Assembly (NCBI GenBank): GCA_965202585.1
Contig: OZ241831.1
Span: 17,918,001-17,982,000 of the forward strand
DNA length: 64,000 bases
Direction of reading: 5' to 3'
Origin: Thalia democratica
Lineage: Eukaryota
Below, in pieces: positions 6,064-50,860 of the stretch; the first letter of the stretch is position 1; every line of letters starts with the position of its first letter. A program made the position numbers and the translations under genes. Under the pieces are notes generated by a model that did not search any database, was not told the origin of the DNA, and saw only the letters and a list, made by a program, of their open reading frames with translations.

Positions 6064-6981
6064 CAGGGTTGCCATTAGTTTTAGAGAAATTTCTTCCAGG
6101 TCTTCTGAATTTCTTCCAAGTTTTTGAAAGTACACACTTTTAACTCTATTTTTAGTTTAAAGTTTAAGGTTAAAAACAGTATTAAGTGGGTCACTTGTGC
6201 ACAAAGACACTTTTGTACGTGCAGACAATTTTGCATGGAGACATTTTTGCACGGGTTGATTTTTTTTTTTAATTATTTTTTTTACTAATTAATTTTTTTT
6301 TTTAATTATCACTGTTACCCTTGGTTGGTAACTTTTTTTTAATTAATTATTTTTCTTATTTTTTTTTACTATCACAGTTACCCCTTACCCTCGGTAAATA
6401 TCTTTTTATCTTTCTAATTAATTATTGTTTTTTTTTTCTAATAATTTTTATTAGTTATTATTTTATTTTCATTATTACTATCACTGTTACCCCTAACCCT
6501 TACCCTTGGTCAGTAACTTTTTTTTTCTTTTATTAATTTATCTTTTAGTTTTTTTTCTGTATTTTTTTATATTTATTTTTCTATTTTTTTTACTATCGTG
6601 CAAAAATGTAACTAGGGCAAAATTGACCGTTGGTGTAAAATTGTTTTTGTGAAATTTTGTGCCCTCTTACAAATTGTCTTTGTGTGAAACTATCTTCAAG
6701 CAATTTTGTTCTAGTGCAATTTAGTCTCCTTGTGCAATTTAGTAATCTTGTGCAATTTTGACCCGTTCCTGTCTTAAGTAGTATAATAACATTGAAAAGA
6801 TAGTGTAAAGCTACTTTAAATGTGTTTTTTAATAAAAAAAAATGATGATGACAAAAAAAATTATTGTTATGATTGATTTTTGGTGTTAAATCAACATTTC
6901 ACTACTTAACATGTAAAAATTGTTTAAGACTACAGGTTTTTTAGCCTAAATTGTCATATTTAAGGTTTTGTGACAACCCTG
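6064..6981. mobile_element. CAGGGTTG-ended MITE interrupted by a nested MULE-like element
   Basis: cagggttgcca (6064) / tgacaaccctg (ends 6981); flanks gtatac / gtatgc. The internal sequence 6771-6980 aligns with the 60940-61278 copy. Confidence 0.75.
6188..6770. mobile_element. Non-autonomous Mutator-like (foldback-type) element, nested
   Basis: Right end gcaattttgacccgttcc; inverted subterminal TTGCAC/GTGCAA arrays; 9-bp flanks gtattaagt / gtcttaagt; internal accctaacccttaccct units. Confidence 0.75.
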
Positions 6982-12682: not shown

Positions 12683-14047
12683 TTATAAGGCAGCCTGGTT
12701 GTATGCTGACTGGGTTGAGTTGGGGAAAAACCTGTTTTTGTTGTAGTTCAGATCGTTGCCATGGTAAATCGTCGCTGCGGCCGCGCTGACGGCTTCGCTA
12801 CCCATCGAACTGATGTTGTTTTCAGAGTAGAACCTGTTGCCGAACATCTGAGAACCGCGGCAAGTGCTCGATTGATCCGACGGATCCTGAATGTACCCCT
12901 GAGCTGGCTGGGACGCGGAGTTGAAAGCTGGTCCTGGTGCTGTTGAACTGGCGCGGGAGCTCGCTCCGTCAAAAGGACTGCTCACTGACAAGTTGGAAGC
13001 TCTCGGAGAGCAACTTTTGTGACCCGTGTGCCCGTAAAACTCGTTTTTTGCAGCAAACTGCGTCGAGTGTCTGAACCCGTTACCGTTCGAAGACGGAAAC
13101 TTTTGATAAAAGTCTAAAGCTTGCTGGTTATTATAAACGCTACTTGCTTCGTTTGAAGTCTTTTGATTTGGAGACAAGTTTTGAGTTTTTGACAATGGTG
13201 AATTATTGTAGAAACTCGGATAGTCTGATGATCGGTATTTTTCTATGTGCTTGTCACTTGACTGTCTTGAGTTCAGTTGTTTGCCAGATATAGAGGTCAT
13301 TCCGATTTCATGCGTAGCGTTTGGGCTCATTTGAATCGTGTTCGACCGGGAACTTTTAGTGGAAAGAGTTGGTGATGGTTGTTTGTTTAATGACCCGTCT
13401 TCAGCTAAATTTGTCTTTGCTTGATTTTGGTTGTTCTTGGCCATATGAGTCATCCAGTGAGTGTAGTTTGGAAACATGTTTTGTTTAGACACTAAGGAGG
13501 AATAAGGATTGTTTGGCTTTTCGCCTTGTCCGTTCATAAAGTTTGCAGACATATTAGGCTTGTTGTAGATTGCCTTATCAAAACTTGAGCTTATTTGTTC
13601 GGGCTTGTTTAAAACTTTGCTTTCTTCTTTATGCTTCTGCTGATCGCAGTCTTGGTGGCTGAGCACGTTATTAACTTGCTTCAAATTTCCTTCGATGCTC
13701 AGCTTAACGTTTCCTGCGTACTTTCCTTCGTCAATTACCAAGTTGGAAGGCGAGTCGCTTTGCAGGAAGCCGTCGTCGACTTTGTTGCAGTTGACGGCCG
13801 AAGGTGAGCTTTTTATTTCCATCGAAAACTGGATGTCAGGGTTTTCGCGGTCTGAAGCGTTGCGCTTCTCGTTTTCGCTCACTTCCTTGCAGCTGTTGCT
13901 CGGACTGGACGTTGATTTCACCACTTCCTCGTTTTCGCTGCTCTTCGTGCTCTGGTCCATCTTCGACTCGTTACAGCTCGTCGCGGCCGGTTTCGCCTGC
14001 ATTTTCAGTTGGCGCCTGAGTTTCGCTCTTCGATTCTGGAACCAAAC
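12683..14047 (-). CDS. UNCX: Uncx-like homeobox gene, exon 3 (VWFQNRRAKLRRQLKMQAKPAATS...AYNQAAL*)
   Basis: tattttag|GTT TGG TTC CAG AAT CGA acceptor completes homeodomain helix 3 in phase 0; 1365-nt open frame with a long S/N/Q-rich tail ending at TAA. Confidence 0.93.
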   Translation of the reverse strand, partial: VWFQNRRAKLRRQLKMQAKPAATSCNESKMDQSTKSSENEEVVKSTSSPSNSCKEVSENEKRNASDRENPDIQFSMEIKSSPSAVNCNKVDDGFLQSDSPSNLVIDEGKYAGNVKLSIEGNLKQVNNVLSHQDCDQQKHKEESKVLNKPEQISSSFDKAIYNKPNMSANFMNGQGEKPNNPYSSLVSKQNMFPNYTHWMTHMAKNNQNQAKTNLAEDGSLNKQPSPTLSTKSSRSNTIQMSPNATHEIGMTSISGKQLNSRQSSDKHIEKYRSSDYPSFYNNSPLSKTQNLSPNQKTSNEASSVYNNQQALDFYQKFPSSNGNGFRHSTQFAAKNEFYGHTGHKSCSPRASNLSVSSPFDGASSRASSTAPGPAFNSASQPAQGYIQDPSDQSSTCRGSQMFGNRFYSENNISSMGSEAVSAAAATIYHGNDLNYNKNRFFPNSTQSAYNQAAL

Positions 14048-17000
14048 CTAAAATATTAGTTTTCGATAAAAGCTTGTTTGGATTGATTATTATCGAAATC
14101 TCTAAACAGTTTTAAAATGATAGAAGTTATTATTTAGCTTTGAAAACTAAAATAGTAACTTTTATTAAATTTATTCTGCTTACTTGTAATCAAACTGGAC
14201 TAAACTTTGAAGCTAATACAGCCTTTACTAGTAACACGTTTATAGATTGCTTTTAAAGCTTTGACCTTTTTAAACTACGGTCAAAAACTTGTATTGTATA
14301 AGGCTATTAATTAATTTTTACAAGAGTAATGAAATTATTTTTTCTGCAAGGTGTAATACAACAATAAGGTAATTGGAGTAATGCGGAAAGTCAATAATGT
14401 GCAACAAATCCGACCGTTTTTAACAAGCCGATTTTCGTATTAGCCTAAAAACGCAATTTTGTTTTGTAATCTACTTTTTTAGCATTGGACGCCTTTCATC
14501 GTTACACGGAAGAACTTTTAACGCACCGCTGACTTGCATAATTACAATTACCTTTAATAGAAATACACTTTTTAGTTTACACGAACAGAAAAAAAACTGA
14601 CTCATCAAAGGTGACGGCCCTTATAGACGGAAAGACCAGCACGAAAGTATATGATGATTTTATTTTTAAATCACGTAAAAACATTTAAGCTTTTGGCTGC
14701 GAGCTCTTTACGAGCGTAAACTTGAACAATGACTTTTTTGTATCCGCACTGTTTTCTTTGCGTTTCGCCAGTCGAATACCTGTTGCCTTTCCGCCGCTAT
14801 CAGCCCCTCGCTTCATTTCTTCAAGTATTAACAAAATTGGCCGCTCTCATGATAATGATACTGTTGCTCTCTCGACTTGGAAGCTTTCCAGCGAAAAGGC
14901 AACGAGACCGGACGGAAAAACGCGAGCATTCGACTTAATTAAGTTCGGGTCGACGCAACGGTTTCTTGCTTGTTGAGAGCATATGATGAATGATAGCTTT
15001 TTTTCAACCGCAGCAGGTTTTCGTGTAATAAACTACTAAAATAGCGCTGTAATTTATGAGATCTGGAACATTTACATTTTTTCGGTTGTTTGTTAATGTG
15101 TTGTTCGAGTTTAAAAATGTTAATTTTGTTTCTTTGAAAACACATTAACGTCAAGCTAAACTATTGCAGAGCTAAAGTATACATTTCTAGTAGTAAGCAA
15201 TTGTTTTGCTACTCAACATAAAATAACCTAAAATTCAACACAAACTAGCAGTGTATGCTATTGCAAGTGCTAATGCATATCAGAATAACCAGCCTGTGTG
15301 AGAAACATTTCTACCGTATTTACATTCTGTCTACTTAATTCGCTTTAACTCGGTAAGCCCTTCGCTCAATCGAATTGAAAATTCAAAGTGCGCTTCAACC
15401 CGATTACGGATGGGGCAGACGACAAGTTGTCTGTCAACGAAATATTTACAAGATATTCGATTTCGACTTGATCGCGGCGTAAGCTTGCAGCATTGAAAAA
15501 AGGCTTACCCGTCTAATCTAACAAGAGTAAAGTGAATTCAGTGCGAATGGCTAAGGCCGCGCGTAGCCTTTACTGCTTACATATGTCGTAAAACAGGCTA
15601 AATGTTGTTTTGTTTGTCTTTAAAGACTAAGTATGGTAACAATATTGCTGGTAGGCTACTTTTTACTTTGAAAGTGCCAGTCAAGGACTAAAAAAAAAAA
15701 AGAAACTTATTAACATATCAGTAATGTTAATTAATTGAGTGCTAAACACATTTAATTTGATTAGCCCACCAGCGGCATTTTACGCTTTTAGTTTTAACCG
15801 CGCTTAAAAGCTTTGGTGACTTAATAGTATAATTTTTTAGTACTTTAAGTGTATTAAAAATTTCTTATAGCTAGTTATAGCCTAATAACTCTTTTTAAAT
15901 TTTGTAAAATTAATTACAAAACAAGCGAAAAAGTTTAACTAAAATTTTTTTTGCTATAAAAATTATACTACCAGCTCGTGATTTAGTATTACATAAAAGT
16001 TATGCGAATAATCTATTATAAAACTGTCTTAAACATTTACATGTATATCTAAATTGTAAATCGTAAGCTTTCTTTGAGCCTATAAATATCGAAGTTAAAC
16101 TAAATTTTAAGCAAAGCAATACTTGTCTTGAAAATAATTAACAATAAAAGAAATTATGATCTTCTTCAAACTAGCCTAATTCCTTCCTGGTAAACAAAAT
16201 GGCGCCATAATCTTACAAATAATAAAAACTTACAAACATAACTTCTACTAGACTGTCTGTATTTTTTATCAAAACACTCCGTCAATCAAAATGAACTTAA
16301 GCAAAAAAGTTTAAGAAATATTTACATCTGAAGTACTTTTACTTATTGGTACTATCGATGCAAAATTATCTAAATAAAAAATGCTTCTAGTTATACCAAT
16401 TGTTTTACTAAATTTTTTTTAGTTAAATTTAAATTATAAATAAAAACTTTAAAAGCAATCTAAAATATATTTTATGAATTAGAAATGAATAAGCACAGTG
16501 GGTAAGTTTTATCGAGAGCACCATTAGTTTAATTAAAAACAAACATTGGTATTGCTATTTTTGTAACTAAATTTTAGAGGACATATTCTTTTCAAGAAAT
16601 GAATGTCATTTCTGATTTTTTTATTAAGTAGATTATTAAATGTAAAATTTTCTAAATTTTTAAAGATTAGTTTATCAAAAGTTTACTGAGGACAAATTGT
16701 AAATCTATAAACGTTTTGAATTTATGTAATATGCAATAAATTTGTAGATTTTACAAAACTATCTTTTAATTTTTCTGTTATTGATGCAATAGAAAAATCA
16801 CAAATAAAAAATTGACTTTGTCCTGGACTGATTCAAGCATTTTTAATTAATTCTGGTCGGATTTAAAAAAATTAAGTTTAAAGTTTTTAAAACACATCAA
16901 AAAACTGTTACTAATTTTTTTTAACTGAGGTTAAAGTTTTGACAAAACTATTCAATTGTTTTTCTATCTACTTAACCAGTAACTAAACTGTTTTTATTTG

Positions 17001-18517
17001 TCATCATAACAACACATTGTTTTGCACAGCCAGTTTGTAAACAAAATCGCGATGCGCACACAACATCGCTTTGATTTTCTCGCTATTTATTTGTGTTCAC
17101 TTTGTTTACACCTCACACACGCAGCTGCCCGTCGACCGGTGTTTGATGCGAAGACACATCGGTGCTTCAGACCCTCTCCTGCCCCTCTGTCCCCAACGTC
17201 GGCGCATTCAAAGGCCCATTCCATTTGAAGTTGCGCCCCGCAGCAAGTCGAGCGTGCACGCACAGCATGTTTACGTTTTGAACGAGGGGCGCGGCCGTTG
17301 GAGCAGAAAGTCGGGTAAACACAGTTGAGTGCCCCGACCGGTTGACCCCTGTGACTGATGCGTTCGGCCTTAGGAAGATTACGCGAGAGCTCAAAGCTAA
17401 CGCGCTTATTCCCGCTCGTTACGGTAATCCCGGTTTTCGGTGTTCGGGGTGTCACGCGAAGTGCAAAAGTCTGGTAATTGCCGGCCGGTTATTGAAAATT
17501 CGCATGGTCGTCTGGTAATAAGCCTGGTGTTTGGATTACAATATGACTTTATTAGGGTAGTGCAAGGGCATTTTCGCAGAACAAAAACATTTACGACTTC
17601 TAATTAAATAAGACAGCTTACAACTTTCTCAAACATAGGACTAAAAGTCCATTTGTTATATTTTACTGACAAAAGTTTACGCTACTTTATCTTACATCTA
17701 CATGAATGCTTAGTATAAACTTAGTCTACTTGGTTTTTAACAACTAGGCAACTACAGCTTTTTAAAAAATAACATGTTAACCAATAATTTTATTAGAAAT
17801 TACTGGCTAGATATTTTTAAACTAACAAAACAGAAAATTGGGAAATTAAAAGAAACATAAAAAAAATTTCTAAGAAAACAGAAGATATTAATTGGCAAGT
17901 TAGAACTAATAATTACGTCAAAAGCTATCCCGCAATGTTCTAATTTTATTTTTATACTTTATAAACATTTAAACTTAGTCTTTACAAATCTAGTCTGTAT
18001 TTTTTCCTTAGTTAAAAGTAACATTTCTTATAAGTGACAAGATACAAATTTATATTACAAAGATCTAGACGTTCCATGAGTATTAAAAGTAACATGCAGT
18101 ATTATTTTGTTTTCTGAAATTTTTATACTAAGTTAGATATTAAATAATTAGACAGTTTATTTTAATTAAGTTTATTTAAAAATTTTATGTATTAAAAGAC
18201 TTGTATGCTGTTTTCCTAATTTGTGGAAGACTTCTAAATTTTAAGTTAAGTGAAAACTTAGTCTTAAAAAGTAATAAATTAGACTCATTGCGTCTAATAA
18301 TGTTTAATTTCGTAACATTTTGTATATTTTAAAGACCCTTTATTTGTCATATTAGTATGAAATTATTTATAACTTATTAATTAAAAAAATTAAAACAACA
18401 ATAGAATCTAGTAGTTATCTAAAACTTATATTCTATGAAATAAAAATACTATGAATAGTCCGATATAATTAGGAAGTTTAATACTGTTACAGTTTACTGA
18501 TAAAACAATATAATCAC

Positions 18518-18675
18518 CTGAATTCTTGCTTCAATCAAGTCAAGTCTCAATGCAAGTGCCTCCCTCATGAAAATGTCAGGGTAGTGAGTCGCGTGAAAGG
18601 CACGTTCCAGCTCCTCGAGCTGCCACTGGCTGTAGTTTGCCCTCGCCCGCCTCTGCTTCGTGTTTTTACTGTCGT
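18518..18675 (-). CDS. UNCX: Uncx-like homeobox gene, exon 2 ([53 protein letters not shown])
   Basis: Branch-like ctaac plus cattgacag| acceptor (phase 1), CAG|gtgatt donor at the classic PRD-class codon 46/47 position. WQLEELE..F..HYPD.FMREALA.RLDL.E is the Unc-4/Uncx signature; Q50. Confidence 0.92.
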
Positions 18676-21025
18676 CTGTCAATGCAAACGACTGTTAGTC
18701 GAACTACCTTTGCCAACTTATTTTTGTTTTGTATATATGTGAAAGGCAGTACAAAAAGTAAAAAAGCATTTAAGTGTGTAATACTAAACAGCGGTATTTG
18801 TTAAACATAAATAAAGTATAATCAAAAGTGTTTAATTTTTTTTTAGGAAATATTATGAGACATAAATAAAAAGTTAAACAAAAATAGTTTCAGTATATAC
18901 TAAAATTGAGCAGCAGTAATTAAAAAATATATTTTTTTTGTTAAATTAATTTCAATTACTTACTAAAGTTCTACCATATTATGTTTAGATAAAAAATAAA
19001 ACTTCTAATATTTCTAATTAGTACATTGTTGAAAACCATATTTAAACTGTTAAGTATTACTAGAGCAGATAAAACCTGACTTTTAAAGTAGTTTTAGTGT
19101 TAATAAGTTGTTTAATAAGGTATAAAACTTTAAGTTAGTTTTGTTTTAACTTAAAATAACTTGTATTTAAAGTTAAGTTTAAAGTAAGTGCCTCATTTAA
19201 TTTAAGGTACACTTAATGCAATAATGTAGTTAACATTCATTCTAAATCTTTATATGAAACAATTATATATAAAATACATATTTTAAACTTTTTTCTTCTG
19301 AGTAAACAGAATCATGTAATAAAGTTTTTTTGTTGTTGTTTTTATTGTTGTTACGGATTTAAATAAAGTTTTTTTTTATTTGTCAATTTGAAGAAAGACT
19401 TAAGTTATAACAGCTACTTATGATAAATAAAATTTGATTTTCAAAAAGTAAAATATTTCCATTTTAACTAGACTCTACTTTTAAGCGTTAATTGCTTGTT
19501 GGCTTCGTAAATTTCGATGATTCAGCTTGAATGTATTAACAACGCAAACAAAACGAGCGATTAGATGCTAACTCGTTTTAAGAGGAACTAATCAAGACTG
19601 CAACTCTACTCATTACTAGCAGTTTTGTAACACACACGAAGAGAAATATTAATGGATGAAGAGGCACACTTTAAGATATACCTGTAAAACCTTGTTTTAC
19701 TTTTGAATACCTGTTTAAAAGCTTAATTTCTTAGTGTTAAATAGCCAAAATAGTTAATGACAGCTACACAGTTTAGTTGTCTAAATTTTCTTAATTTGAT
19801 ATTTACGTGCATAAAAAAGATAGTTTGTAGTATGACATGCTTATTTTTGTATAAATTTTCTTATTGTAAGAAAATAGAGAGCTTTTGAGTCTTTTATTTT
19901 TGTATGTAATTTTTTAAATTATAGTTTTGTCAGATTATTACCTTAATGGTATATGTTTTTTAGTGTTTAAGCAATAGTTGAAAAAAAAAATAATAAATTG
20001 TACATGTACATGCTTTTTTATTCAAACTAACAGTCGTTTTTTATGTAATTCCTAACTAATTGTGTTAAAATAAACTTATTATATACTTTAATTTTTTAAT
20101 TCTAAACTAAATTAGTGAGAATGTTACAACAGCGGAAAACGCTTTTAAATTGAATTAAGATTCTATTTGGTAACTACTGAGTATAAATTGACTTATGTTT
20201 TATAATCAGAAGTTAATAACTAACCAAGCCTTAATTTTTATAATTTTCTATGATTAATAACTTTGAATTCCTTATTTTGAGTGTAAGTCTTTATAATACT
20301 AGGTATGAATCTTTTTTAATATATATCAGTTACGTAAGTTTTTATGTGAAAAATAGGTAGTTTGAGGTATTAAAAAGTTTTTTAGTTTTAAATTAGACTT
20401 TAGTTTATAACTCTATGTATTTATTTATCAATCAACTTTTTATGTATTTTTTTAATTGGTTTAATTTACAAAATACTTATAAGTAAGTTATTTTTTTTAG
20501 TACATTTACAAAAGCTATAGTAAAAAAAAACGACGTTGTATTATTTTTTTTACAATCTCATTTTAAAGTTTTTAAACAATTTTAATTTTTATGCCGACAA
20601 TTATATTTCAAAAGTTAAAACTTTCTTATAGTCTTTATTTTATTTTATTTTTTGCATAAATTATACAAAGCGCTTACTAGTAATATTGTTTATAAAACTC
20701 AAAAATATTTTAAGGTACTCATTTATGTATAAAAGTTTAAAAAAAACAAAAAAAAAAAACTTTTAACAAAAATTTACGACAAAAACTTTCTTTGTAAACA
20801 AATAAAAAGCCATTTTTGAAAAATTGTTTGATTATTAAATCAAAATGTGTTTAAATAATTTGTCAATATCTATCCTTTCTCAACTTTAAGTTTAGCACTA
20901 AAAAAAAGCTACGATAGGTTTGTACTTAGCTTGAATATTGAACAGTTAATCTATGCCACTATCTAATTATATTACACCTCCGTTGCTAAAGTACTTTTAT
21001 ATATGTCTTCAAACTTTGTACTAAC

Positions 21026-21446
21026 CATAGTGTGAGTAGTCGTGGCCGTTAGGAGCGGCGTGGGCGCCAATCCCTCCAAATCCCGCCGCCTGCGACGCCA
21101 TCATCAGCGCTTGCTTGCATGGATCCGTGGCTGTGTAGGGCGGGAAAAGTCCCCCGGCCCCGTTCGCCACCCCGGCCATTTCGTTGTACGAGCTGTACAG
21201 GGCCGCTGCAGCCCGGTTCGCCGCGGCCGCTCCCAGTTGCTGGTTGCTCGTAGCCATGAGGTTTTGCTGGGGGTAGTAGTTGTGGTGAGTGTTGGACGGG
21301 TGACCCGCGCTGTTGCTGCCCTGCGGGGATATTGGGAATCCCCGGTGGGAGTAGAAGTTGTTCGGGTAACCGTGGGCTATCATCGAGTGAGAGCCACCGT
21401 CTACGCCAGGCACAAGTGAGTTGGATTGTCGGTATGGGTTGTACAT
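21026..21446 (-). CDS. UNCX: Uncx-like homeobox gene, first coding exon (MYNPYRQS...HDYSHY)
   Basis: GC-rich open frame from ATG, ending TAT G|gttagt; the phase 1 donor matches the exon 2 acceptor. Low-complexity A/G/N/Q-rich N-terminus typical of transcription factors. Joining to exon 2 is inferred from phase. Confidence 0.82.
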
Positions 21447-24203
21447 TGCTATGCTTTTTATAAAATTGCACTGTAAGTTTTTAAAGATTTCTTATATTTT
21501 ATAAAAACTTAAGTTTTTCTTTACAAAGTTTTTTGTATTTTTATTACGTTTATACTATGACTGACGAAATTAGTAACAGCAACATTTTTATCTTTACATT
21601 ACTTAGCGACTTTTTCGCAACTGACTAAGCATAAAACATTTTTGTTATAGCACAGGTTTTTTTGGAAAAGTTTAAAATCAACGAATAAAATTATAATCCT
21701 TTTTTCAAAAAGTTTGTATTGATTAGTACTGGACGTACTTAAACTTTAATTTTGCTTAAACATCAGTACGTTTGGTTTTCAAATATATTGATTACTGATA
21801 AATTACGTAAAAGTCTACTGATATACTCTGAAATTTATTGTTTAATTGTCTAATAAATCTTGTGTATTACAACAGGAAATTACCTTAAATTTTTCTAAGT
21901 TTTTAAACAAGTTTTTACAACAATGGTTTGCATTTTTACTGTTGTATTAATTTTTAGTAAAAACACTTTAATTTACTCAGGAAAAAATATGTTAGCAGTG
22001 AAATACTTAAACAAACTGAGTTTTAATAAAATGATTTAAGAAAATAAACTCTTTTACAAAAACATCAAAACTGTTTTCACTTAGCTTGTAATAATTTATA
22101 ACTTGGCAAAAAAAAACAATTTTATACGGTATGCTTTTATTGCTTTTTGAAAATGGACAAACTTAAATTCAAACTTTAACGGTTAATGATGAAGTAAATA
22201 CCTTAAAACGCTACAATAAAATCTATAATCTATCTAAACTACATCTGTAATTAAGATTTTTATCTTCTCTTTCCTCTTTTTTTAGTTAAACGTTAACAGA
22301 CTTTTAATATATTTTTTATTTTCAACTGTACTATTTTGACTGCACATTTATACATTAATTTTAGAAAACATGAGAAAAAAAACAATTTTTTTGTGTCTAC
22401 AACTTGAATCATAAATTTTAAAAGCATCCGTTAAAAGTCTATTTTCTATCAAAAATAATATTCTTAATGATTTGTAATGAAATGTTAAAACTATCCGCTC
22501 TTTGCATAAAAAATAATAAAACATACGGCTAAAAAGAAAACAGTAGGCTATAATTGGTGCTGAGATTTCCGTAGTCATAATCTTGATTAGTAAATTTAAT
22601 CAAGCACTTGTCTAATTAGTTTACTGTACATGCTCGTGCTCACACAATAGCAGCAAGGCCAAAGTGCCGTAGCGAAGACTGAGAAGCTCAGTTTTTCTGA
22701 CGCTAGTGAGAGAGCTCTTTGCACTGTTGCAAAAAAATCTTTATACAAAAAAAATGATACAAAGCTTTATCGTAACGTTACGCCAAATACTATTCGCAAA
22801 CAGATTAAAACACAAAACCGCTTTTCAATCCTTTTTAAAAGCTGCATATTGATGGCTTAAAACAAACTTTATAAAACTATAACAAATTTTTCGACACCTA
22901 GACCTTTAAAATGAACTGTAATATTGGTTTTAAAAAATTCAAAAAAATATTTTTTACTTTTATCTTATAAGTGAAAAGGATAAAATTAATGTAGTTTATA
23001 ACATTTATTTGATGAAAAATTGTCCTTACTTAATTTAGTGTAAATATTTATCCTTAAAGCAATTAGGTTTAGAAATTGATTAAAACAAAAGACCAGGTGT
23101 AATTGTAAACAGATATTCTTCTTTTAAGTAAAAATTTTATATATTATAATATACAATTGCTGTAACAACTGGTAAAGCATAAACTATAAAAGCAAACTTA
23201 GGTATTTGTAATTATTATTACACAACTAAATCACAAACCTATCTTTTTTTACATATAACACTAGTCTTTAGACTCTTAATTTTCAAAAATTTCTGATTAA
23301 AACTCAAAAGTTACTTACATATTTTTTTTCAAAAACAATAAATTTTAATGACTTTATCACTTAGTTGATTCAACTTTAGAAATTGTTTTATTTATAAAGT
23401 TAATTAACCACACAATCATTTTTAATCGACCATAGATCCAATTATAATACAAGGTTTTACTATAAGTACTTAATCAGACAGATTTCAATCCAGACAATTT
23501 TTTGTTTATAAAGTTACAGCTTTAAATATACTTTTAATTTTACTCTACGTAAAAATTAAGTTTTAGCAAAAAAAAAGTACTAAGTTACTAAATTCTGTTG
23601 AAACTATTTTTGTACAATATTTATAGCTTATTTTAATCTTCTAGAACTGCAAGAGATTGAGAAATCGAAAATTACACGGTAAACATCTACTAAATGCTCA
23701 CAAGCAATTATAATTACTCGATATTTTGTGATAAGGGGTTGAAGTGCGTGTTAAAATAATTAATTTACAACAGACGTCTTTTGTGCATTTTTGACGATTG
23801 TGCAGGACATTGCGGGGTTAATGTTGAACAACTTACTACATAGAGCACAATTTTGATAATGATCTGCTGTATCGTTTTTCAGTAATTGTTGGCATACTTT
23901 TTATGATGCACTTGATATACACGTACGGTAGTAAGGGATTGAGATTAATGGCTGCATCAACGGAGACAAGAGGCAAAAATGCTATTTTGAATGACATTTG
24001 CTACTGCAGTTGGTTTTTGCACTTTTTGCCTTAAATCGTAACGTTCATGAAGTTTTACTTTTTCAAGTTTTTTAAAATAAATTTTAAGTAACAGTTAAGT
24101 AGAAAAGATTTGTTTACTTTTTTTACTAATAAAACATTTACATGATAACTTTCTAAACAAGCTTACTTGATACATTTAAAGGTGACAAAAACTTAAATTT
24201 TAA

Positions 24204-24401
24204 ATGATGAGTGCCAATCAAAAAATATATCATATTAAGATCGACCAAACGGCGCCATGATAAAAAAAGACCAAAATGTATATGCATTTATCGCAAGTCG
24301 CCATCGACGAGAAACTGACAGTTGGCGCAAAGAGATCGACGAAATATTTTGTTTCCACCGACAGACATTTTGCAGTTTGCCGCTTCAAAAAAAAGAGATA
24401 A
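24204..24401 (+). other. Duplicated conserved element, copy A (CCAAT + GGCGCCAT + 41-codon sORF at 24276-24401)
   Basis: Aligns with 42211-42407; 86/90 identity over 24276-24365. Confidence 0.85.
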
Positions 24402-27400
24402 GGATCTTGCTGCGTTTAGATACATAAAACAAGACTTGTATGTGTACGCTCAGGACATTAGTAGTTTTAATTACAACAATTGTCTAAATGATGACTGTCT
24501 AAGCACATCTTGTTTAAGACAGAACGAACAACTTATATTTGGTAATAGCTAATTAAAGGTATTAATTAAAAAAGTTTTACATGATTTTAATTTTAGAGTT
24601 AAGTAATTGAACGTTATGTTAGAACGAGGCAGTTAAAACGGTTGAAATGTAGTTTACTTGTAAATTACAACACCGTTTTACTAACTTTTGCTAAATGCAG
24701 TTTACAATAAATATGTTAAGTACAAGTACTTTTATATATTGATCAAAACTAGTACATACTTTGAAAATATTCTTTTTTCAAAGTTTTACATGAGTTCTAA
24801 CATATCTGACAAAAAGATACTTCTTATGGCCGTTCCAGACATCTCAATCAAAAACTAGACAAAATCGTTTAATGAAGTGGAAGACAAAGAAATAGTTTAC
24901 ATGTTGATAGATGACGTTGTAACACAAGTAGTAGCAAGCAACGTAAACACAAACTCACTCTGCACGTCTAGTGTGTAGGGGTGAGCTAACTCAAGCAAAA
25001 ACTTAAGCTGGGGGTTCAAACCAACCTTGTATTTTGGCATCGTGCTTTCTCACGCCGTGGACCGCTTCGATTAATCTATATAGGAAGACAATACGGCAGA
25101 GATTCAAGTTTCTTTTAGTCAACAAATTTACCAATCGAGTTATCGCTTCGAGTACGTAATCTTCAAATAAATTTCAATTTGACAAGAAGTCGGTTATCTT
25201 AAACTGCGTGGTGTTTAATATCAAGAGACTTTTCAAAAAGATCAGACTTGCCTGGAAACCAACAAAGACAGGGGTGGGTAAGCGGATACTTAGTGGGGTG
25301 AATGGGAACACAAGTGAGAATGATTCGCACGTTAGGATGACATTTTCAGCGGTGTGCACGGCCGTCACTCAACACTCGGTTGCAATCACGCGTAGTTGTG
25401 ACGTATTTACTTGTACTTATTTGTTTGTAACCTTGTTTAATTGTTAAATAAAAAAATTGTGGTAAGTTATGTTTACATACGTTAAAAAACAAAAACTTTT
25501 CTCTTTGTTTGACAATATTTTTATAATTCATACAATCTAAAAAATAGACATTTTGTAAAGAAACTAAATTTACAAAATGCATAAAATTAAATAGAAATTT
25601 ATAAAAATCTTTAAACATTATAATGAAATACCTCTAATCCCATAGTTGTGGAATTGTAAGTTTAAATTTTTAGTCTTACCAGAATTTTTGATCAATTTTT
25701 TTATAACACTAGACTTTATTAGTGTGAAAAAATTGTAGTAAATAATGGAAATCTAGCAATAATTTTTTATAAGTCTTCAATCCTTATTAATTTTATTTTT
25801 TGTTTCTAATTTTAACTGTAAAATTTAAAATAAAATACTGTATAGAATGTATTTTAAAAGCGTACAATTAAAACCGGATTAAAATTTACAGTAAAAAATT
25901 ACAATATTGATAAAATTATTTCAATTGTTTTTAATAATTGATAATTAAATTTTTATACGAACATCACACTTTTTTGTAAAAGAGGTTAGTATTTAAACCT
26001 TTCCTCCTATAAAAGTTAGTGTAAAACCAACAAATTATGTTTAAAATCGAGCTTATAGTAATTACGAATAAGTTTTAATTTTCTTTTTGAATAATGATCT
26101 TCAATATAAAACTTAAGATTTAAATGAAATTTTTAAGAAACGCTAAATGCTATTCGTTATCATGTTTGGTGGTTAGCAGTAAAACGATTTTTAAGAATAA
26201 ACTAATTTAGTTATATTTTGTAAAACTTGTTAAGTAATTTTTTACTCACTAACTTAAATAGTTTTTTGTACTTGATTAGAATTCAAACTAATACTCTTTC
26301 TTAATTTAATTATGCGATAAAACACATAAGAAGCACGTTAGTAATAACTACTCTATTTAATTTCATTAAATATATTTAATTTAAACCAAAGCATTTAGTA
26401 TTAAATAAACTTAATTATTTTCAAGTTGTGCTTGTCTGTTTTACTTTTTTGTTCTATTGTTTCTTTAAATTAAAACATGGTGAAGAACTTTGACATTTGT
26501 ATTAAATGTACACAATATATTTAATATTTTTGTTTACACCAAAATTTCTGAGATAATTATCAAGTTTAATCTGTTTTCAAGTTATATGTAAAACAAAACG
26601 CTTTTCAAACTTTCTAAACGTTAAACAATGAAATAGTTGTCAAGTTATTCTAACCTACTTAAAACTTAATTGGCCGGAAAGCTTTTGTTTTTAGTTGCTT
26701 AAACAAACCAAGTAGAGTAATCAATAAATTGTTATCTGTAAAAGGTAGTTTTTAATACTTAAATAAAAAACTTTTCAAAACACTAAGTTTTGTTGAAAAA
26801 AAAATTAGATATTTATGTTACTAAACTAAAATCGAACTCCTAAAGGTGTAATATATAAAAAAAAATATTTAACTTTACCCACCATAACAATTTTACAAAT
26901 AAAAACGTTCTTAAAATTATTTTAGACTAAAACAATAGTTTAAACAAGTAATCCTATTACAAACGTAAGTGGTGCAGTTTTCTTACTAAGTTCAGTTGGT
27001 GTTATACCAATTAATTAACTGTATCAAGGTGTGTGACAATTTCTAGTCCGAGCTTTTTTGTGGCGGTGGAAATCTTATTTCCTTTTCCCTATGATCATAA
27101 TCATGGCGGCTTAATGCTGCACAAACTCATTATTATGACCAATTTTACGCTTATTTGAATGAAGTAACGAGCTAAGAGCGGCATTTTTTAGCATTAAGCC
27201 TGGTATTAGGCAAATTATCCTCTTTTCTTATAAAACGAACATTCTTCTAACAAAAATAGCCTCACACGCTGAAGTTTGAATCTTCATTGATTAGGATACA
27301 CATCTTAGAAAGTATCTTACATCTTGCTTAAACTGTTTATGACTTCAAGACGGCAAAGCTGTAAGTACACTTAAAAATAACTTTTTACAAAATATATCGT

Positions 27401-27891: not shown

Positions 27892-28289
27892 GGGTAGCTG
27901 TCAAATTTGCACAAGCGTATAAAACTGCACGAATATACTTTTGCACGAAGACACTTTTGCACGAGCAGAAAATTTTGCACTGAGACATTTTTGCACAAGT
28001 TTAATTTTTTATTTATTTGTATATATATTTTTTTAATCACTGTTACCCCTAACCCTTACCCTCGGTCAGTAACATTTTTTTCTATTTTTTATTTAATAGA
28101 TTATCTTTTATTTTTTTTTATAGTTTTTTCTGTTTTTTTTTACTCTTGTGCAAAAATGTGACTTGTGCAAAATTGACCCTTGGTGCAAAATTGTCTTTGT
28201 GCAATTTTGTGCACTTGTGCAATTTTGTGCACTTGTGCCATTTTGTGCACTTGTGCAATTTTGTCTTCGTGCAATTTTGACCCGTTCCC
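27892..28289. mobile_element. Non-autonomous Mutator-like (foldback-type) element
   Basis: Termini gggtagctgtcaaatttgcac / gtgcaattttgacccgttccc; perfect 9-bp TSD aaaagtttt (27883-27891, 28290-28298). Confidence 0.88.
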
Positions 28290-35342: not shown

Positions 35343-35765
35343 GTATAGGTGTCAAATATGCACGAAAGGAGACTTTTGCACGAAGACACTTTTGCACAGA
35401 TTGAAATTTTTTTAAAATATTTTTTTTTGTTATTTTTATTTAAACTACCATTGTAACCCCTAACCCTTACCCTCGGTTAGTAACTTTTTTTTTTCTTTTT
35501 TTTTATTATTTTATTTACTTTTTTATCTTTTATTCCTTGTTTTTTCTAACAATATTTTTCATTAGTTTTTTATTTATTTTTACTATCACTGTTACCCCTA
35601 ACCCTTACCCTCGGTCAGTAATTTTTTTTTCTGCTTTTTTATTCATTAATTTATCTAATTGTAATTTTTTCTAGTTTTTTTTTGTTTTTTTCAATACTTT
35701 ATCTATTTTCTTACTATCGTGCAAAAATGACCCTTCGTGCAAAAAAGTTATTGTGACCTGTTTCC
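35343..35765. mobile_element. Non-autonomous Mutator-like element (same family as 6188 and 27892)
   Basis: ttttgcacga arrays on the left, tcgtgcaaaa on the right; two accctaacccttaccctcggt units; 9-bp flanks actaaaaat / actaaaagt. Confidence 0.78.
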
Positions 35766-38700: not shown

Positions 38701-41700
38701 TTACTAATAATAGGTTTTAATCTTTTAGTATACTCTTAAAAAATCTGATTTTTAAAGCATAACAATTTACTTGTATAGTTTTTTATTATTTCTATAAACA
38801 ACAAAACTATGTTTTTACAAAAATGGCGCCTCTAATATTCTTTCCATGAAATTAAATTGAATCATAAACTTATATTACACATGTATAACTAAATGTATTT
38901 ATATAAATTTAACATTTAAAAAGTTTTAAACATATTATACAAGCATTCTACATAAAATCTAGATTAAAATATTACGTATTGGTTTATTAATAAAAAATAT
39001 GGTTCCAAAATTAACCTGAGGATATAGCTTCTCTGAGAATTAGAAAAGGTTAGCTATTTTTAATTTATGTCTAATAAATAAACATATATTTGAACAAATA
39101 AAAGCTCAGTAAATTGTTTTTAAATCTTCTTTGTTTTTATCGTGAAAAATATAGTATTTGTTTTCGAACTTTAGTTAATTTTTTTACGTTTTGTGAAGCT
39201 TTAAAAGCCCTTTATTTTATGATCATTGTTTAAATTTATAGATAAAATAACTTAAAACCTGTTATATTAGTAATTTAGTATTCACTTACTTCGTCATTGA
39301 ATTATAATAGTTTTAAGCACTAAAGTTTCATACATAAGATTTTTTTAAAGTTTAAGTTTATACTTAAGCAAAGTTTATTTTGTACAATAGCTGCTAAAAA
39401 CTCGTAACTTGTTTAAAAATAAAATACTTTAAAGTGTTTTAAATGCTAGAAAAAGTGCTAAACGCTGCTAATTGATCGCTGCATATATCTTTGAAAATTA
39501 CCTCTCTTAAACTTTTGCACAGTGTTTGGCGCCAAAATAAAACTGGTAACCAAAACAAATTAGGCTTAAAAAGATTATCAGCTAGCAGACAAAAATTAGC
39601 TACCGAATTTTTACGCTAATTACGAAGTGTTGATGCTGCTAAGTGAGCGGTAGTAATTGTTTCGAAGTGCAAAGTAAACGGATGCTCGACTAATGTAACT
39701 AGTTTCGCAAACAATTACTTTTAGTTAAAAATGTTTCTTTGTCTTGTTTTTTCAAGTTAGTTTGTTTAAAATTGTAAACATAAATGAAAAGATAAAAACA
39801 GAAAAACTAAAGAATTTGTTGTTTATCGATGTATAGCTTGCGCAAATTTTTTATTTGATGATTTTATGGATTTAAAATTGTTGCTCGTATGGTGAAGATT
39901 ATTAGGTCATTTTTTAGCAAATGTATTTTTAACAAAGATAAATTAATTTGAATATAAAATAATTGTATTATAGGATAATCTTGATAAAAAACAAAATTAA
40001 CATTAATTTTTATAAAACTTTACTTCTGGGTCTCAAACATCATATTTTCAATTTTTTTTTTCCATGAGTGTTTTAATAATGATAAGGAAAATTAAAAGTT
40101 TTATACTTTGTAGTAACAAATTGAGTCTGTAAAGCATATGTATTGTGAGCGATCAATCACAAAAAGTAAACATCAATCGTGCGTCGTTAACTTGTCGTTA
40201 GTGCCGGTAAACGAGATGATTTTACTTCCGATAAACGAGGGGCGACAACAAAGTATTAATGTCTAAAATTCAGAGACATCGCCGATCTTGTTCAACTTGA
40301 ACGACATTTCGAGCGAAAGTCGTGTGTGATAATGACGTAACAATTGATGATATCTTATTTCTTAAAGTATTTGTTTACTGCATGACCTTTTTCTCTCTGC
40401 GACAACAAGCGGAATAGTTTTAACATTTGAATTTATCACAACTTACCAAAGTTTAGTTTCTTTCAGATAAAACTGTAAATTTAAGCAAAAAAAAAAGCAT
40501 AAATCTAGTCTTATGTATCAAAAAGTTTAACTAATTATTGATAAAAATGAAACTATTTATTACACTTATGTTTGGTTAGTAGTGGGCAACGTACGGTATT
40601 CGAAGTACTTTTCAGCTCAAAAAAAATTGTGTAAATCAAGCAATTTTTAGCATTGCAATAAAAAATGTTTTTTAAATGAGCTCTTAATTTGATTTTAAGT
40701 GCTTAAAATGTTTATTAGATGATCATTTTATAAGTTATTCAACTTTAAAAAACTACTTTTGTAGTTTTTATCATATAGTTATTCAAAAATTTGTTCAACG
40801 GTTAAACGTTTTTTAACATAACCGGCACGCGTAGGGTTTTTCTGATAAGTTAGGTCCACCAACTAAAAAAAGTGTCCCTATGTATTTATTAAAATGGTTA
40901 TTCTAATAGTTGACATTTAATAAAATACTTTTTAACAAATTTATAGAACAAAAGATAAACTAAAAGTTTAAAAATGATTAATAATTTATTAAAAAAAATT
41001 GATTCTTAACTTGAGATATATGATAGTTACAAAATTAACTTAGTTTTTAAAACTAGTTGTGAACAATGGTTGCTAATAAAAAAAAAATTTCAATGGAATA
41101 TTATAACAAAATTTTGAAAAATTTAATTTGAAGTAATGTAAAGCTGAACTAATTTATCTATTTCCGATTTTTAACACACCTATAACTTTATATTACAAAT
41201 ATATTAATCTTTAAGTTACTTAATGTTATTTTTGTTTTATGTTAATATTTTCGTATGTTTTCTAACTAAAATACTTTAAATAAAATGCATTTGAACATAA
41301 TCTCGAATTATAATACACTAAAACAAATTTTTAATAATTAATAAATGAATAATAAAGGTTTTTTTTCTTTACTAAATATATATATTTTTTTTATATTAAG
41401 TTTATGAACTAAAAAAAAGTTAATACGAAAATTTTTAATAAAATTCTGTCTAACTTTTTGTAACATCTTGTTTTTATATAGAAATGCACATTTGATTTAA
41501 TAGCTTAAACTGAAATGAACTTTATTACCCCTATGTTTTAGTGTCTTTAAGGTTTTTAAGAACACATAACATAAATAATTATTTTTAAATATTTTTTATA
41601 TGTTTTTAGTGATTTAGACACTCTTACATGTACAGTTTTCAATTTATAGATAAATTATCGTAAAAATAAAACGTGTAACACTATAAAGTAAATAAGAAAA

Positions 41701-42210
41701 CATTTCACAAAAAATTGATTTGTAACTCAAGTAAAAATTTGTTTTTACAAAGAAAAACAAAAGAAAGTCTTCATAAAATAAAATAACTTATATACAATAC
41801 TTAACAAAAAACTTTTATAATTGAAAGTAAAACTTAAACTTAATAGTTTTAAGTTAATATGTATGCGTTTTATTGATTTAAAACTACGAACAGCGTTGTA
41901 TGGTTATAGTAGGCTTAATAAAACAAAATTAACAACTTTTTAATATTATCAGAAAGTTTGAGCTGTTAAATAAATAAAAATTAAGTTATCAAAATTGTTA
42001 TTATCCAAAAAAACATTTTATAATATTCAACTTTAGTTGAAACAAGTAAGTAATTTTTCAAACTATCTTAAACATGTAAAACTGTAGTTTAGCTAATATT
42101 ATAATAAATAACTATTAACAGCTATTGAAAAAGTATTTCTTTTATTTTTTTTTTCAAAATATTTAAATCGAAGTTTAAACCACAAAAAACTTGCTACTTG
42201 GTAACTTAGT

Positions 42211-42407
42211 ATGACGAGTGCCAATCAAACAAGCAAATTATTTTCAAAACGACCAAACGGCGCCATGAAAAAAAGACAAAAATGTATATGCATTTATCGC
42301 AAGTCGCCATCGACGAGAAACTGACAGTTGGTGCAATGAGATCGACGAAATATTTCGTTTCCACCGGCAGATTAGCTTTATTTTTCGCTGGGAATACACT
42401 ACTGTAA
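42211..42407 (+). other. Duplicated conserved element, copy B (41-codon sORF at 42282-42407)
   Basis: Paralog of 24204-24401, same orientation, offset ~18.0 kb. Confidence 0.85.
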
Positions 42408-46597: not shown

Positions 46598-49500
46598 CAG
46601 GGGTCGGCAAACTGCGGCCCGCGAGTACGTTTTTTCTTTGAACGGAATGCGGCCCGCGAAGGAAAATTTAACGGCCCGCGAGCGGGTGGGTGTCAGAATG
46701 ACACAGCGACAAAATGACACGGTGCGTCATTTTAGCACGGTGCGTCACTTCGACACGGAGGGTCACTTTGGCACGGCGACAAAATGACACGGTGCGTCAC
46801 TTTGGCACAGAGGGTCACTTTGACACGGCGACAAAATGACACGGTGCGTCAGCTTGGCACAGCGACAAAATGACACGGTGCGTCACCTTGGCACGGTGCG
46901 TCACTTTGGCACGGAGGGTCACTTTGGCACAGCGACACTTTGGCACGGAGGGTCACTTTGGCACAGCGACAAAATGACACGGTGCGTCACTTTGGCACAG
47001 AGCGTCACTTTGGCACAGCGACAAAACGACACGGTGCGTCACTTTGGCACAGCGACAAAATGACACGATGCGTCAATTTGGCACAGAGGGTCACTTTGGC
47101 ACTGCGACAAAACGACACGGTGCGTCACTTTGGCACGGAGGGTCACTTTGACACAACGACAAAACGACACGATACGTCACTTTGACACAGCGACAAAATG
47201 ACACGGTGCGTCACTATAGCATGGATTAACAAACTTATAAGGAAAACAAAACTTCTTCAGTAATATAACTTTTAAATGTAAAATTTTGATAGTAATTAGT
47301 TAAACAAAAGATTTATTATATTTTTTCCAAACTATAGTAGCTTGATACACTTGAAACTATATATGATACATTGCTTAAAATTTAAGTCATAGTATAAAAA
47401 CAAAAATATTCTTAAGTTTTATTTTTTAAGTTTCACGACTTTTCATATTTATGTAATGAATAAAATTTAGTATTTTTTGTTAAAAGTTTAATTAATTATT
47501 ATAAGGAATTGTTATAAAAAATAACTAAGATTTAATTTAATACAGAGTTATTTCGTAGTAAGAATAAGTCATGCGTGTTTTAACTCCAGTTTTTAAAAAA
47601 ACAGATGCTTTTGTAGTAACTAGCCATTTATATTAAATATGTATATATATTTATATTCAACAAAAGTTAATAAGTTAGGATGTTTACTTAAAACTCTGTA
47701 TTGAAAATATATAATAAACTTGTCTAAAAGCAAATAATTAAAATAAACGGTCCTGGTGCTAAATTTATGAAAAAGTTAAAAACAGTATTATGAACAGTTG
47801 AGAAAAAAGTAAGAGTCTGATGCAACCATTCATGCACATTTATATATTTATCACTTTAAAAAAAAATAATCACTAGAGGTTATACATATAACATTGCTGC
47901 TGCAGCCTTCTAATTAAAGCTGCAGCCATTCTATTAAAGTTAATACTATAAGTCTTTTTTATTTTTACAAAACTTTTTAGTCTAAAATATAAAAAATTAA
48001 ACTTAGAGTATGACAGATAAAATAGTATTTTTTTGCATATAAGGAATTAAATAGTATTTATATTTAATACAAAATCAGTAAATAAATTTCATAATAATAC
48101 AGTAAAAGCAGATTTTAATTTGCTAGTTAACCTTTTCTGCTACTTTATACTCTTGAGTTTTATTAAAAGTTTTAAAAAACTCGGTTTTGTCTAAACTCCG
48201 TTATGAAAATAATATTTAATTTTCTATTTTTAATCTTGCGAAAAAATAAGGAGTTTTTTGTAAAAATAAATACATTTTTTAAATTTTAAAACAATATTGT
48301 TTATTAATGAGGAGTTAACTTCTTTCTGATGAAAAAAAAAAAAGAAAAAAAATTATTTACTTTTGATATAAAATAGACAACATTTTGAAAGTATGGGGCA
48401 ATTGGGAGTAATTGGTGAAAGCGATGCTCTATTTACCCAATTATCATGGGCAACCAGTGGTCTCCAATATCTGTATTGAGACTTTGGAGACCACGGGTTG
48501 CCTGAGCTTTAGGAATATTCTAATAGGAATCAGACGCCTAATCCATTAAAAAACGGAGCGAGAAAATAATTTAGATAAATGCTAATCAATTTTTTAACGA
48601 GTTTAAAATCTTTACAATATCAATTGCGATAATGTTTTATTTTGCGAAGTTTTACTATTATAGTATTGAGAAATATTGTATTTTGTTAAAGTAAGTCTAC
48701 AATTGTATTACAAGTGTGTATTAGTGGTTTATTGAGTTTTATTTAAAGAGATGCTTGATGTAGGGAATGTTTTGCTAAAAAACTAATTTATTTGCGGTTA
48801 TTTGTACTTATACTTTTACCTATGCATTTTTAGTGCTTAGGTGCACAACTTTATTTGCGAACGAGCATTATGTTTATACTTCTAAGTGCACGATATATGT
48901 TGCAACTAACATAAGTCGCATAGAGGCGCATAATTTCGTTCTTTTAAGTCAAGTGCATAATGATTTTTTGAAGATGTTGCTACTAACGTAGGTCGTCAGG
49001 TAACGCAGTATTTTAGTTCAAAATTGCAACCTATTGAGTCGCCAAAAGAGCGCAAGTATTAATTTTTTTAAGCATAAAAACGTAAAATAAGAACCGCATT
49101 AGAATTTAGAATTACAACAGCAGAAAAGTTGTTTTCGATAACGTCTGAGTTTTAGTTTATTAAACAAATTTTCCTCTGTATTTACATCTACTAGTTTATT
49201 GTTTTGATGTGCTAAATGATTGATCTAAAATGTAGATTGTATTTTTTAAATCAGAATGTTGCTGAAGATTAAAAAGTATATTTATATGAGTTTCTATTGT
49301 TCTAGTCGTAAAATGGCAAGTCATTTTCTAATTTTTATTACTCGTTTCAAGTTCTAGTACTAAACTGTGTTTAAGTTTTTCCATTCGAAAGAAATCAAAA
49401 ATAAATTCCCTTTAATTTTGGCTTTTTATTTTGTTAAAAAAGTTGCTGCTTTTGCATCTTTGTGAACGTTGTTTGATACAAACAACTATTTGTCGTTTAT

Positions 49501-50860
49501 TAAGCGCAGCTTTCAAGTACACCTAACACCTTGCTACTCCAAAAAAATTGAGTATGTTGTTTATAAGTACGACGATGGACAATAGATGGTATAAACATTA
49601 CGTGTTTCACTTTATTTTATGAAGTCATAATCAAAAATTCCTAGGTCTTTGTTTTTAAAGTTAATCAATGTGATTGTTGCTAATTCTACAAAACCGGTTA
49701 GAAGACAAGAAACCGAAAAAATTCCTAGAAAAATAAGATCGTTGTCCATACCAATGAAAATTGAAGTTTCACAACAAATCGTTCCCTCCCTTATTAACGA
49801 CCGTGTCATTTTGTCGCTGTGCTAAAGTGACCCTCCGTGTCATTTTGTCGCTGTGCCAAAGTGACCCTCCGTGCCAAAGTGACGCACCGTGCCAAGGTGA
49901 CGTACCGTGTCATTTTGTCGCCGTGACAAAGTGATCCTCTGTGCCAAAGTGACGCACCGTGTCATTTTGTCGCTGTGCCAAAGTGACCCTCCGTGCCAAA
50001 CTGACGCACCGTGTCATTTTGTCGCTGTGCCAAAGTGACGCACCGTGTCTATTTGACGACCGTGTCATTTTGTCGCTGTGTCATTCTGACCCGCTCCCCC
50101 TCGAGCATGTGAATGTGGCCCGCTGAACAAAAGTATATTTTAAGTTATTATTTTTCCGTAATTTAGTTTTATTTAATTAATTTTTTTTTAAGTCCCTGTA
50201 TAAAAGTTTTAAATAATTAAGAGACTTTACTGATTAAGCTTAAAAACGTGAAAAAGACAGATTGGAATTCTAACAGGTTTTTTTTTCTTAGTTTCATAAC
50301 AATTTTCTTCTTACAACAGCAAGTAATTAATAATCTAAAAAAAGATTGTAAAGAGTGCTTGGATTTAGTAAGTTAGTTATTTAATACCTATTTAATAAAT
50401 AAACTAAATACAAATGTTTTCCATTTTGTACAAAACTAATGAACATTAATTAGTATTAACTAAAATGTCATTTCTTTTTAAAAGTTTTGTACACCTAAGT
50501 TTCTTTTATAGATGTTTTATCAATAAATGTTTTATTGAGTGTGCACGAAAACATTTAAAATAACATAATAACAAGAAATAAGGTTTATTTGATTTTGGTT
50601 TTGACACATTTTGATTTTTTAGTAGTTTTCTTTGTACTTTAAATTAATTTCTATGCACATCAATGTAAAAAGATTCTCATATTTTAATCCAATTTTTATT
50701 TAGTACTTAAGTAAGTTTAAGTTTATGCATAATTTTCTTACATTATTGTTTCTACACATAATATCTAAAAGTGTACAGACACATTTAAAACAATATATGT
50801 GACCTAAATTAAGACAGTTTTTGTTAGGTAAACATTTTCATTTTTCAAACAATTTTTTTT
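46598..50860 (+). mobile_element. hAT-Charlie (MER58-like terminus) non-autonomous element, interrupted and 3'-truncated
   Basis: caggggtcggcaaactgcggcccgcg preceded by the target gtctagac. Sequence 50100-50860 is colinear with 58455-59400 of the intact copy. Right TIR not found; right coordinate approximate. Confidence 0.75.
46684..50097. mobile_element. 3.4 kb foldback-type Mutator-like element nested in the hAT element
   Basis: Inverted termini gtcagaatgacacagcgacaaaatgacacgg; inverted arrays of 16/18-bp modules (46690-47215 and 49798-50088); 9-bp TSD cccgcgagc / ccctcgagc. Confidence 0.82.

Follow-up and report, generated by a model that had tools for sequence, protein, structure and literature searches.

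A duplicated conserved non-coding element, probably cis-regulatory, upstream of a paired-like homeobox gene

The homeobox locus and its duplicated element

The window, by which we mean the whole stretch of 64,000 nucleotides analyzed here, was found to be very AT-rich (26.5% G+C) and to carry a homeobox gene on its minus strand (Table 1). Since the best solved relatives of its homeodomain were aristaless, Alx4, and Phox2b, the gene was assigned to the paired-like class; we take its signature to be Uncx/unc-4-like, the comparison itself supporting only the paired-like class. A 96%-identical relative of the exon-1 protein was detected in marine metagenome assemblies. The next gene, likewise on the minus strand, encodes an RRM protein with RS-type repeats, and the RS-type repeat stretch at 55.4–55.7 kb probably belongs to it. 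No convincing coding ORFs were identified between the homeobox gene and these repeats (~55.4 kb), and both copies of the element described below lie within this ~34-kb gene-free stretch. A homeobox search of the genome revealed no second Uncx-type homeobox near the copies. A remnant of a lost tandem Uncx paralog beside copy B was also considered and was rejected, as tblastn with all exons of the gene matched nothing else in the window.

Within the homeobox gene, a segment of ~230 nt (20635–20866) that follows closely on the first coding exon was absent from 8/8 related metagenome contigs spanning the site; either the window has gained it by a lineage-specific insertion or the relatives have lost it. 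A G+C-rich island (17000–17600, up to 58% G+C), situated between the homeobox exon and the last one, was shown to contain overlapping ORFs of 75–122 aa on both strands that do not resemble a part of the homeodomain protein; it may represent either a conserved intronic element or an exon that has escaped annotation.

Table 1. Features of the locus and of the duplicated element (positions in the window; L003 is the colinear metagenome contig described in the text)
Feature	Position	Strand	Remarks
Last exon of the homeobox gene, opening with the rest of the homeodomain (VWFQNRRAK)	12683..14047	-	
Homeobox exon, homeodomain positions 1–46	18497..18682	-	Pfam Homeodomain, E 4.2e-12
First coding exon (ORF) of the paired-like (Uncx-like) homeobox gene, presumed target	21021..21446	-	141-aa ORF; 93–98% conserved vs L003
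Conserved block	22501–22800		93–96% vs L003
Conserved non-coding block, unduplicated	23601..24000	.	97–99% vs L003 in 100-nt bins; three-way identical fraction 0.94–0.98
Decayed left flank of the duplication	24072..24203	.	Copy B counterpart 42099–42210; relaxed blastn extends to 24072/42099
Conserved block including copy A	24201–24600		89–96% vs L003
Copy A of the duplicated element	24204..24365	.	blastn in the window vs copy B: 89.6% identity, 163 columns, E 1e-52
Upstream invariant block with CCAAT box (GCCAATCA)	24209..24222	.	Identical in 4/4 sequences
Copy A core, highly conserved, 125 nt	24241..24365	.	Copy B counterpart 42248–42371
41-codon ORF, copy A, judged non-coding	24276..24401	+	
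Conserved sequence directly right of copy A, without counterpart beside copy B	24366..24650	.	86–96% across orthologs
Conserved non-coding block, unduplicated	24801..25400	.	94–100% vs L003
Conserved block	26601–26700		95% vs L003
Copy B of the duplicated element	42211..42371	.	Same orientation as copy A
41-codon ORF, copy B, judged non-coding	42282..42407	+	Last 11 codons unrelated to those of copy A
Next gene, RRM protein with RS-type repeats	61.5–62.7 kb	-	RRM exon

As shown in Table 1, blastn recovered the element as one pair of matching stretches, which confirmed the paralogy proposed in the original prediction. Copy A lies ~2.8 kb and copy B ~20.8 kb upstream of the ATG of the homeobox gene. 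A DNA search of the 802-Mb assembly (E<=10) returned only these two copies, and a search allowing up to 3 mismatches located a 26-nt invariant stretch of the element at 2 genomic positions only. It had been foreseen that many dispersed genomic copies would mark the element as a fragment of a transposable element; with only 2 copies genome-wide, this origin was ruled out.

The two cores were shown to differ in 8 of 125 columns when a 2-nt indel is counted as two (94–95% identity), and the CpG observed/expected ratio of the core was 1.9, compared with 1.0 for the window. Alignment of the first 90 nt of the ORFs revealed exactly the 4 differing sites that had been predicted (24326, 24331, 24350, and 24361). 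The predicted indel just before the ATG was likewise located, at 24260–24261 and 15 nt ahead of the start codon, and the CCAAT box (24214) and GGCGCCAT (24251) upstream of the ATG were present in both copies as claimed. A variable spacer of ~20 nt separates the CCAAT block from the core, and GCCAATCA occurs in the window at the two copies only.

The original prediction had further described the neighboring duplicated sequence as far more diverged. This description proved correct for the left flank, where ~130 nt of weak homology were detected by local alignment (score 25 against 16.2 +/- 2.6 in shuffles, with 3/300 dinucleotide shuffles reaching the score) and where A and B have decayed to about 60% identity. 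It did not hold for the right flanks, in which local alignment against shuffles revealed no significant homology between A and B, the similarity ending abruptly at 24365/42371.

Relatives of the element and its conservation

Two marine metagenome contigs from two related organisms were available for comparison. Contig L013 (2.25 kb), which carries the protein entry P0005, is 94% identical to window positions 22394–24650, and contig L003 (6.9 kb), one of those encoding the 96%-identical relative of the exon-1 protein, is colinear with window positions 19837–27031 at 80–87% identity. Because the genome holds only 2 copies of the element, L003 and L013 represent copy-A orthologs from other, related organisms rather than additional copies of the same genome, and the four-sequence comparison described below thus consisted of window copy A, window copy B, and these two orthologs. 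The region was also contained in public DNA runs of two labeled organisms (A and B) and in marine metagenomes; contigs from these sources showed both copies, and a shared 53-nt unitig displayed double depth in these DNA runs. A copy-B ortholog was not recovered by two exact-pattern scans of JGI metagenome contigs, by a protein word search for which the 74-aa ORF on the minus strand of copy B served as query, or by exact look-ups of ten ORFs around the copies.

Contigs L003, L013, and L004–L012 are ENA marine metagenome contigs, several of which derive from Tara Oceans PRJEB4352. The animal or its close relatives, at about 6% and about 13–20% non-coding divergence, are common enough in ocean plankton metagenomes to yield multi-kb contigs, and such contigs are usable as orthologs for phylogenetic footprinting elsewhere in this genome.

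Over the 163 columns of the element, the pairwise differences amounted to 4 (A and L013), 11 (A and L003), 17 (A and B), 15 (L013 and B), and 19 (L003 and B). When A, L003, and B were compared, 23 columns were variable, 13 of which separated B from both A sequences, while 4 were private to window A and 6 to L003; the ORF differences at 24326 and 24331 were both changes private to copy A of the window. The pattern of these differences places copy B outside the group formed by the three copy-A sequences, so that it branched off before the species split. Because of this outgroup position, the duplication is old, predating the splits among these organisms. In addition, since window A is no closer to window B than the orthologs are, no recent gene conversion has occurred in the lineage of the window, although an older conversion between the copies, predating the species splits, may have taken place.

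The neutral background has diverged from the window by about 6% in L013 and by 20–28% in L003, and the cores of A and B differ by ~6%. Across species, copy A was shown to be 3–4 times better conserved than the background, the 11 columns that distinguish it from L003 standing against about 20–28% in background bins. The 8 differing core columns, set against the 20–28% neutral divergence and the left flank at ~60% identity, indicate that the core has been under purifying selection at the DNA level in both copies, an indication that for copy B comes only from the A–B distance and the shape of the tree. The suggestion that the core is either selected or gene-converted was thus upheld as to constraint on the sequence, while recent gene conversion was contradicted by the three-lineage comparison. 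The same data bear on the view that the two copies are similar only because they arose recently, by duplication or gene conversion, and are evolving neutrally without any function. Such a history would agree with the presence of only two copies and with the restriction of the shared sequence to ~160 nt; it is scarcely tenable given that copy B lies outside the copy-A sequences of three lineages, between which neutral DNA has diverged by ~6% and 20–28% although the cores differ so little; that no sign of recent conversion was seen; and that copy A is conserved above its background.

Copy A was found to be only one part of a conserved region. Upstream of the gene, the identity to L003 runs at a background of 72–80% that is interrupted by the sharply conserved blocks listed in Table 1, and a three-way comparison with L013 agreed with this pattern. 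Copy A belongs to a 1.8-kb cluster of blocks conserved at 90–100%, of which it is not the best-conserved part. As the sequence immediately to its right (24366–24650) is equally conserved across species but absent beside copy B, it was concluded that the duplication covers only part of a conserved non-coding region that is larger than the element. The unduplicated blocks at 23601–24000 and 24801–25400 are better conserved than the element and rich in AATTA-type homeodomain sites, with a CTATATAGG motif at 25077; the main regulatory region of the homeobox gene probably resides in these blocks.

Coding, RNA, and promoter readings

The headline of the original prediction was a candidate micropeptide. 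On this reading, the 41-codon ORFs would encode paralogous micropeptides with a conserved 30-residue N-terminal part, the shared 30 codons being translated as a constant N terminus, followed by a variable tail, from two paralogous loci beside the homeobox gene. Both translations read as stated, and the tails of A and B, comprising the last 11 codons, proved unrelated by alignment as had been noted. In common with known smORF and micropeptide genes, a short ATG-initiated ORF is open in both copies, and it is open in both copy-A orthologs as well, which keep the start. That both ORFs stop at codon 42, a coincidence with a probability of ~4% by chance at this base composition, is true of the window copies but is lost in the relatives, since the poly-A run in the tail (24381–24388) changes there by non-multiples of three: it is longer by 2 nt in L013 and by 4 nt in L003, and shorter by 1 nt in organism B (deletion at 24387). 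The resulting ORF lengths were 41 codons in window copy A, 59 in L013, and 51 in L003, beside the 41 of copy B. An open frame in the core is in itself unremarkable, because 3/6 frames are open across it in both copies.

Nor did the few substitutions reveal a coding pattern. Among the four sequences, the shared 30 codons have accumulated 8 substitutions, 3 synonymous and 5 non-synonymous, distributed 0/4/4 over the three codon positions; dN/dS was nominally 0.47, a value which, coming from only 8 substitutions, is not distinguishable from 1 (p = 0.25). Conservation ignores the boundaries of the ORF, starting 35–70 nt ahead of the ATG and ending 11 codons before the stop, and is just as strong over the 35 nt that precede the start codon, as well as in the CCAAT block, which lies 60 nt ahead of it. 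Pfam yielded no match to the 41-codon peptide. A phmmer search against 1.84 billion representatives returned one real match, P0005, representing the copy A of a close relative, a second match being a low-complexity repeat protein; a word search of 5.8 billion protein clusters likewise recovered only copy A, with the limitation that small ORFs are rarely called in assemblies. Unlike in known micropeptide genes, ORF length is thus unconserved here, no significant purifying selection on codons could be discerned from the 8 substitutions, and homologs were not found in these searches. The evidence therefore disfavors translation of the shared codons, micropeptides were rejected as an explanation that is very improbable, and the 41-codon ORF is, judged by these comparisons, an accident of base composition. 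More generally, a short ORF that falls in a conserved, GC-richer island of an AT-rich genome calls for evidence from orthologs before it is taken for a micropeptide.

As an alternative, a C/D-like RNA had been proposed, and the element might more broadly be the gene of some small, structured non-coding RNA. Like C/D box snoRNAs, copy A possesses C-like and D-like boxes at a compatible spacing (ATGATGA at 24204 and CTGA at 24315, 111 nt apart), and T-runs follow soon after the conserved part in both copies. In contrast to those RNAs, no consistent terminal stem was detected, the stem comprising 2 bp in copy A and 5 bp, G-U pairs included, in copy B, where 4 bp or more is expected; the C box of copy B is altered to ATGACGA against the RUGAUGA consensus; and the conserved sequence extends for another 50 nt beyond the D box. 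No Rfam family matched the window at gathering thresholds, or the element even at E<=10. Fold energies did not surpass those of shuffled sequences (z from -0.7 to +1.3), with predicted folds that differ between the copies. Consensus folding of the four sequences with RNAalifold detected not one compensatory pair, and its covariation term was positive for either strand, several substitutions breaking predicted pairs. The C/D-like RNA was thus rejected together with structured RNAs in general on the grounds of Rfam, folding, covariation, and the terminal stem, and we see very little chance that the element is an RNA gene.

A further reading holds that each copy is the core promoter and first-exon start of an unannotated transcript, either a plus-strand non-coding RNA running divergently from the homeobox gene or a transcript of that gene with an alternative 5' exon on the minus strand; the conserved core would in that case comprise the promoter together with the 5' end of the RNA. 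The CCAAT box, the TATA-like A/T run, and the CpG richness of the core are found more typically in promoters than in distal enhancers, and the element may accordingly drive a transcript. On the plus strand, the invariant CCAAT at 24214 lies ~75 nt and an A/T-rich run at 24261 lies ~30 nt upstream of a possible start near 24288; on the minus strand, an initiator-like TCAGTT (24313–24318) has an A/T run ~30 nt upstream and ATGGCG motifs downstream. On the minus strand, too, a GTAAGC donor-like site (24162–24167) is invariant in the three copy-A orthologs. These signals are tempered by the fact that plausible motif sets, initiator-like matches among them, occur on both strands and so discriminate little in AT-rich DNA, TCAGTT itself being found 38 times in the window against 41 expected. 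Moreover, the TATA-like run is disrupted in copy B by deletion of a T, the donor-like site is not retained there, and the homeobox gene has TATA-like and initiator-like candidates of its own ~170 nt upstream of its ATG. The public runs containing the region are DNA runs with no RNA run among them, which is weak evidence in the same direction. Taken together, we regard a promoter and first exon as an unlikely, yet still realistic, account of the two copies.

A putative regulatory module and comparable systems

The two stretches are probably copies of one conserved non-coding cis-regulatory DNA element upstream of the homeobox gene, acting as an enhancer or a promoter-like module. This reading, which the original prediction had offered as a conserved regulatory module or a pair of shadow enhancers, fits the constraint on the sequence, the location, the restriction to two copies, and the lack of a coding or RNA signal. 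Factor binding and the identity of the target gene are inferred, and the element may behave either as a distal enhancer or in a promoter-like way.

Among the four sequences, invariant runs were located at 24209–24222, 24242–24259 (containing GGCGCCATG), 24273–24283, 24285–24310 (GTCGCCATCGACGA), 24312–24324 (CTGACAG), and 24332–24349 (the second ATCGACGA). The motifs invariant in 4/4 sequences were thus the CCAAT box, two CGCCAT cores, two ATCGACGA repeats, and CTGACAG. As consensus matches, these motifs can be assigned to known site types: CCAAT is the NF-Y type of site, GCCAT is the YY1/Pho core, and TGACAG is of the TALE-homeodomain type. Both ATCGACGA and GCGCCAT occur 5 times in the window against 0.7 expected, with 4 and 2 occurrences, respectively, falling inside the two copies. 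A CTCF-like or E2F-like reading of the GGCGC part was dropped, its position varying among the four sequences.

Other motifs were also noticed in the window. GGCGCC is found 8 times against 0.7 expected. A perfect palindrome, TTTGGCGCCAAA, which resembles an E2F site, is situated at 39526–39537, and another palindrome, ATGGCGCCAT, at 16199–16208; on the minus strand, GGCGCCATTTT at ~38823 (38823–38832) resembles a YY1/Pho-type site.

In the account that we favor, an old local duplication took roughly 300 nt from a larger regulatory region, which lies 2–4 kb upstream of the gene, and placed a copy of them 18 kb farther out. Subsequently ~160 nt, and especially the 125-nt core, were kept nearly unchanged at both sites while the rest decayed. 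The element would work as DNA, providing a compact platform of putative transcription-factor sites, and its two copies, being related, may supply the same gene with partly redundant input, much as shadow enhancers or promoter-like modules do.

Duplicated conserved non-coding elements (dCNEs) have been described around developmental transcription-factor genes, mainly in vertebrates (CONDOR database, PMC2020477; PMC1896008). The element resembles dCNEs in being a short non-coding sequence of high identity at two sites in a gene-poor region beside a homeobox gene, conserved at the nucleotide level and devoid of a coding or RNA-structure signal. It departs from them in that the classical examples adjoin paralogous genes arising from whole-genome duplication, whereas both copies here flank one gene with no paralog or pseudogene nearby, and in that the present comparison spans only closely related marine organisms instead of a deep phylogeny.

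The concept of shadow, or redundant, enhancers comes from work on Drosophila. As in that concept, two related cis-elements lie here in the same orientation at differing distances from one developmental gene, and both have been retained. Most shadow enhancers, however, share binding-site content and not alignable sequence, whereas these copies are 90–95% identical, and overlapping activity is in the present case putative only. Tandemly duplicated enhancers have been the subject of recent reports (PMC13696352, PMC12449766). If the regulatory reading is true, the element would join the conserved non-coding elements already known beside developmental homeobox genes without founding a new class; its alignable second copy within the same regulatory region would provide a clean natural case for redundancy between sequence-related enhancers. 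Such elements have been little studied in this kind of marine animal.

Other repeated sequences were also recorded in the window. A dispersed repeat family, which is probably a transposable element, occupies at least 4 places (6193–6941, 27926–28288, 35359–35744, and 61039–61210) at 77–88% identity. A G+C-rich tandem-repeat array with a period of roughly 35–52 nt has an inverted partner array ~3 kb away (46680–47225 and 49797–50103). Finally, the intergenic region that harbors the element contains a second, weaker direct duplication, in which ~750 nt recur 8.4 kb apart at 74–79% identity (50103–50843 / 58460–59416).
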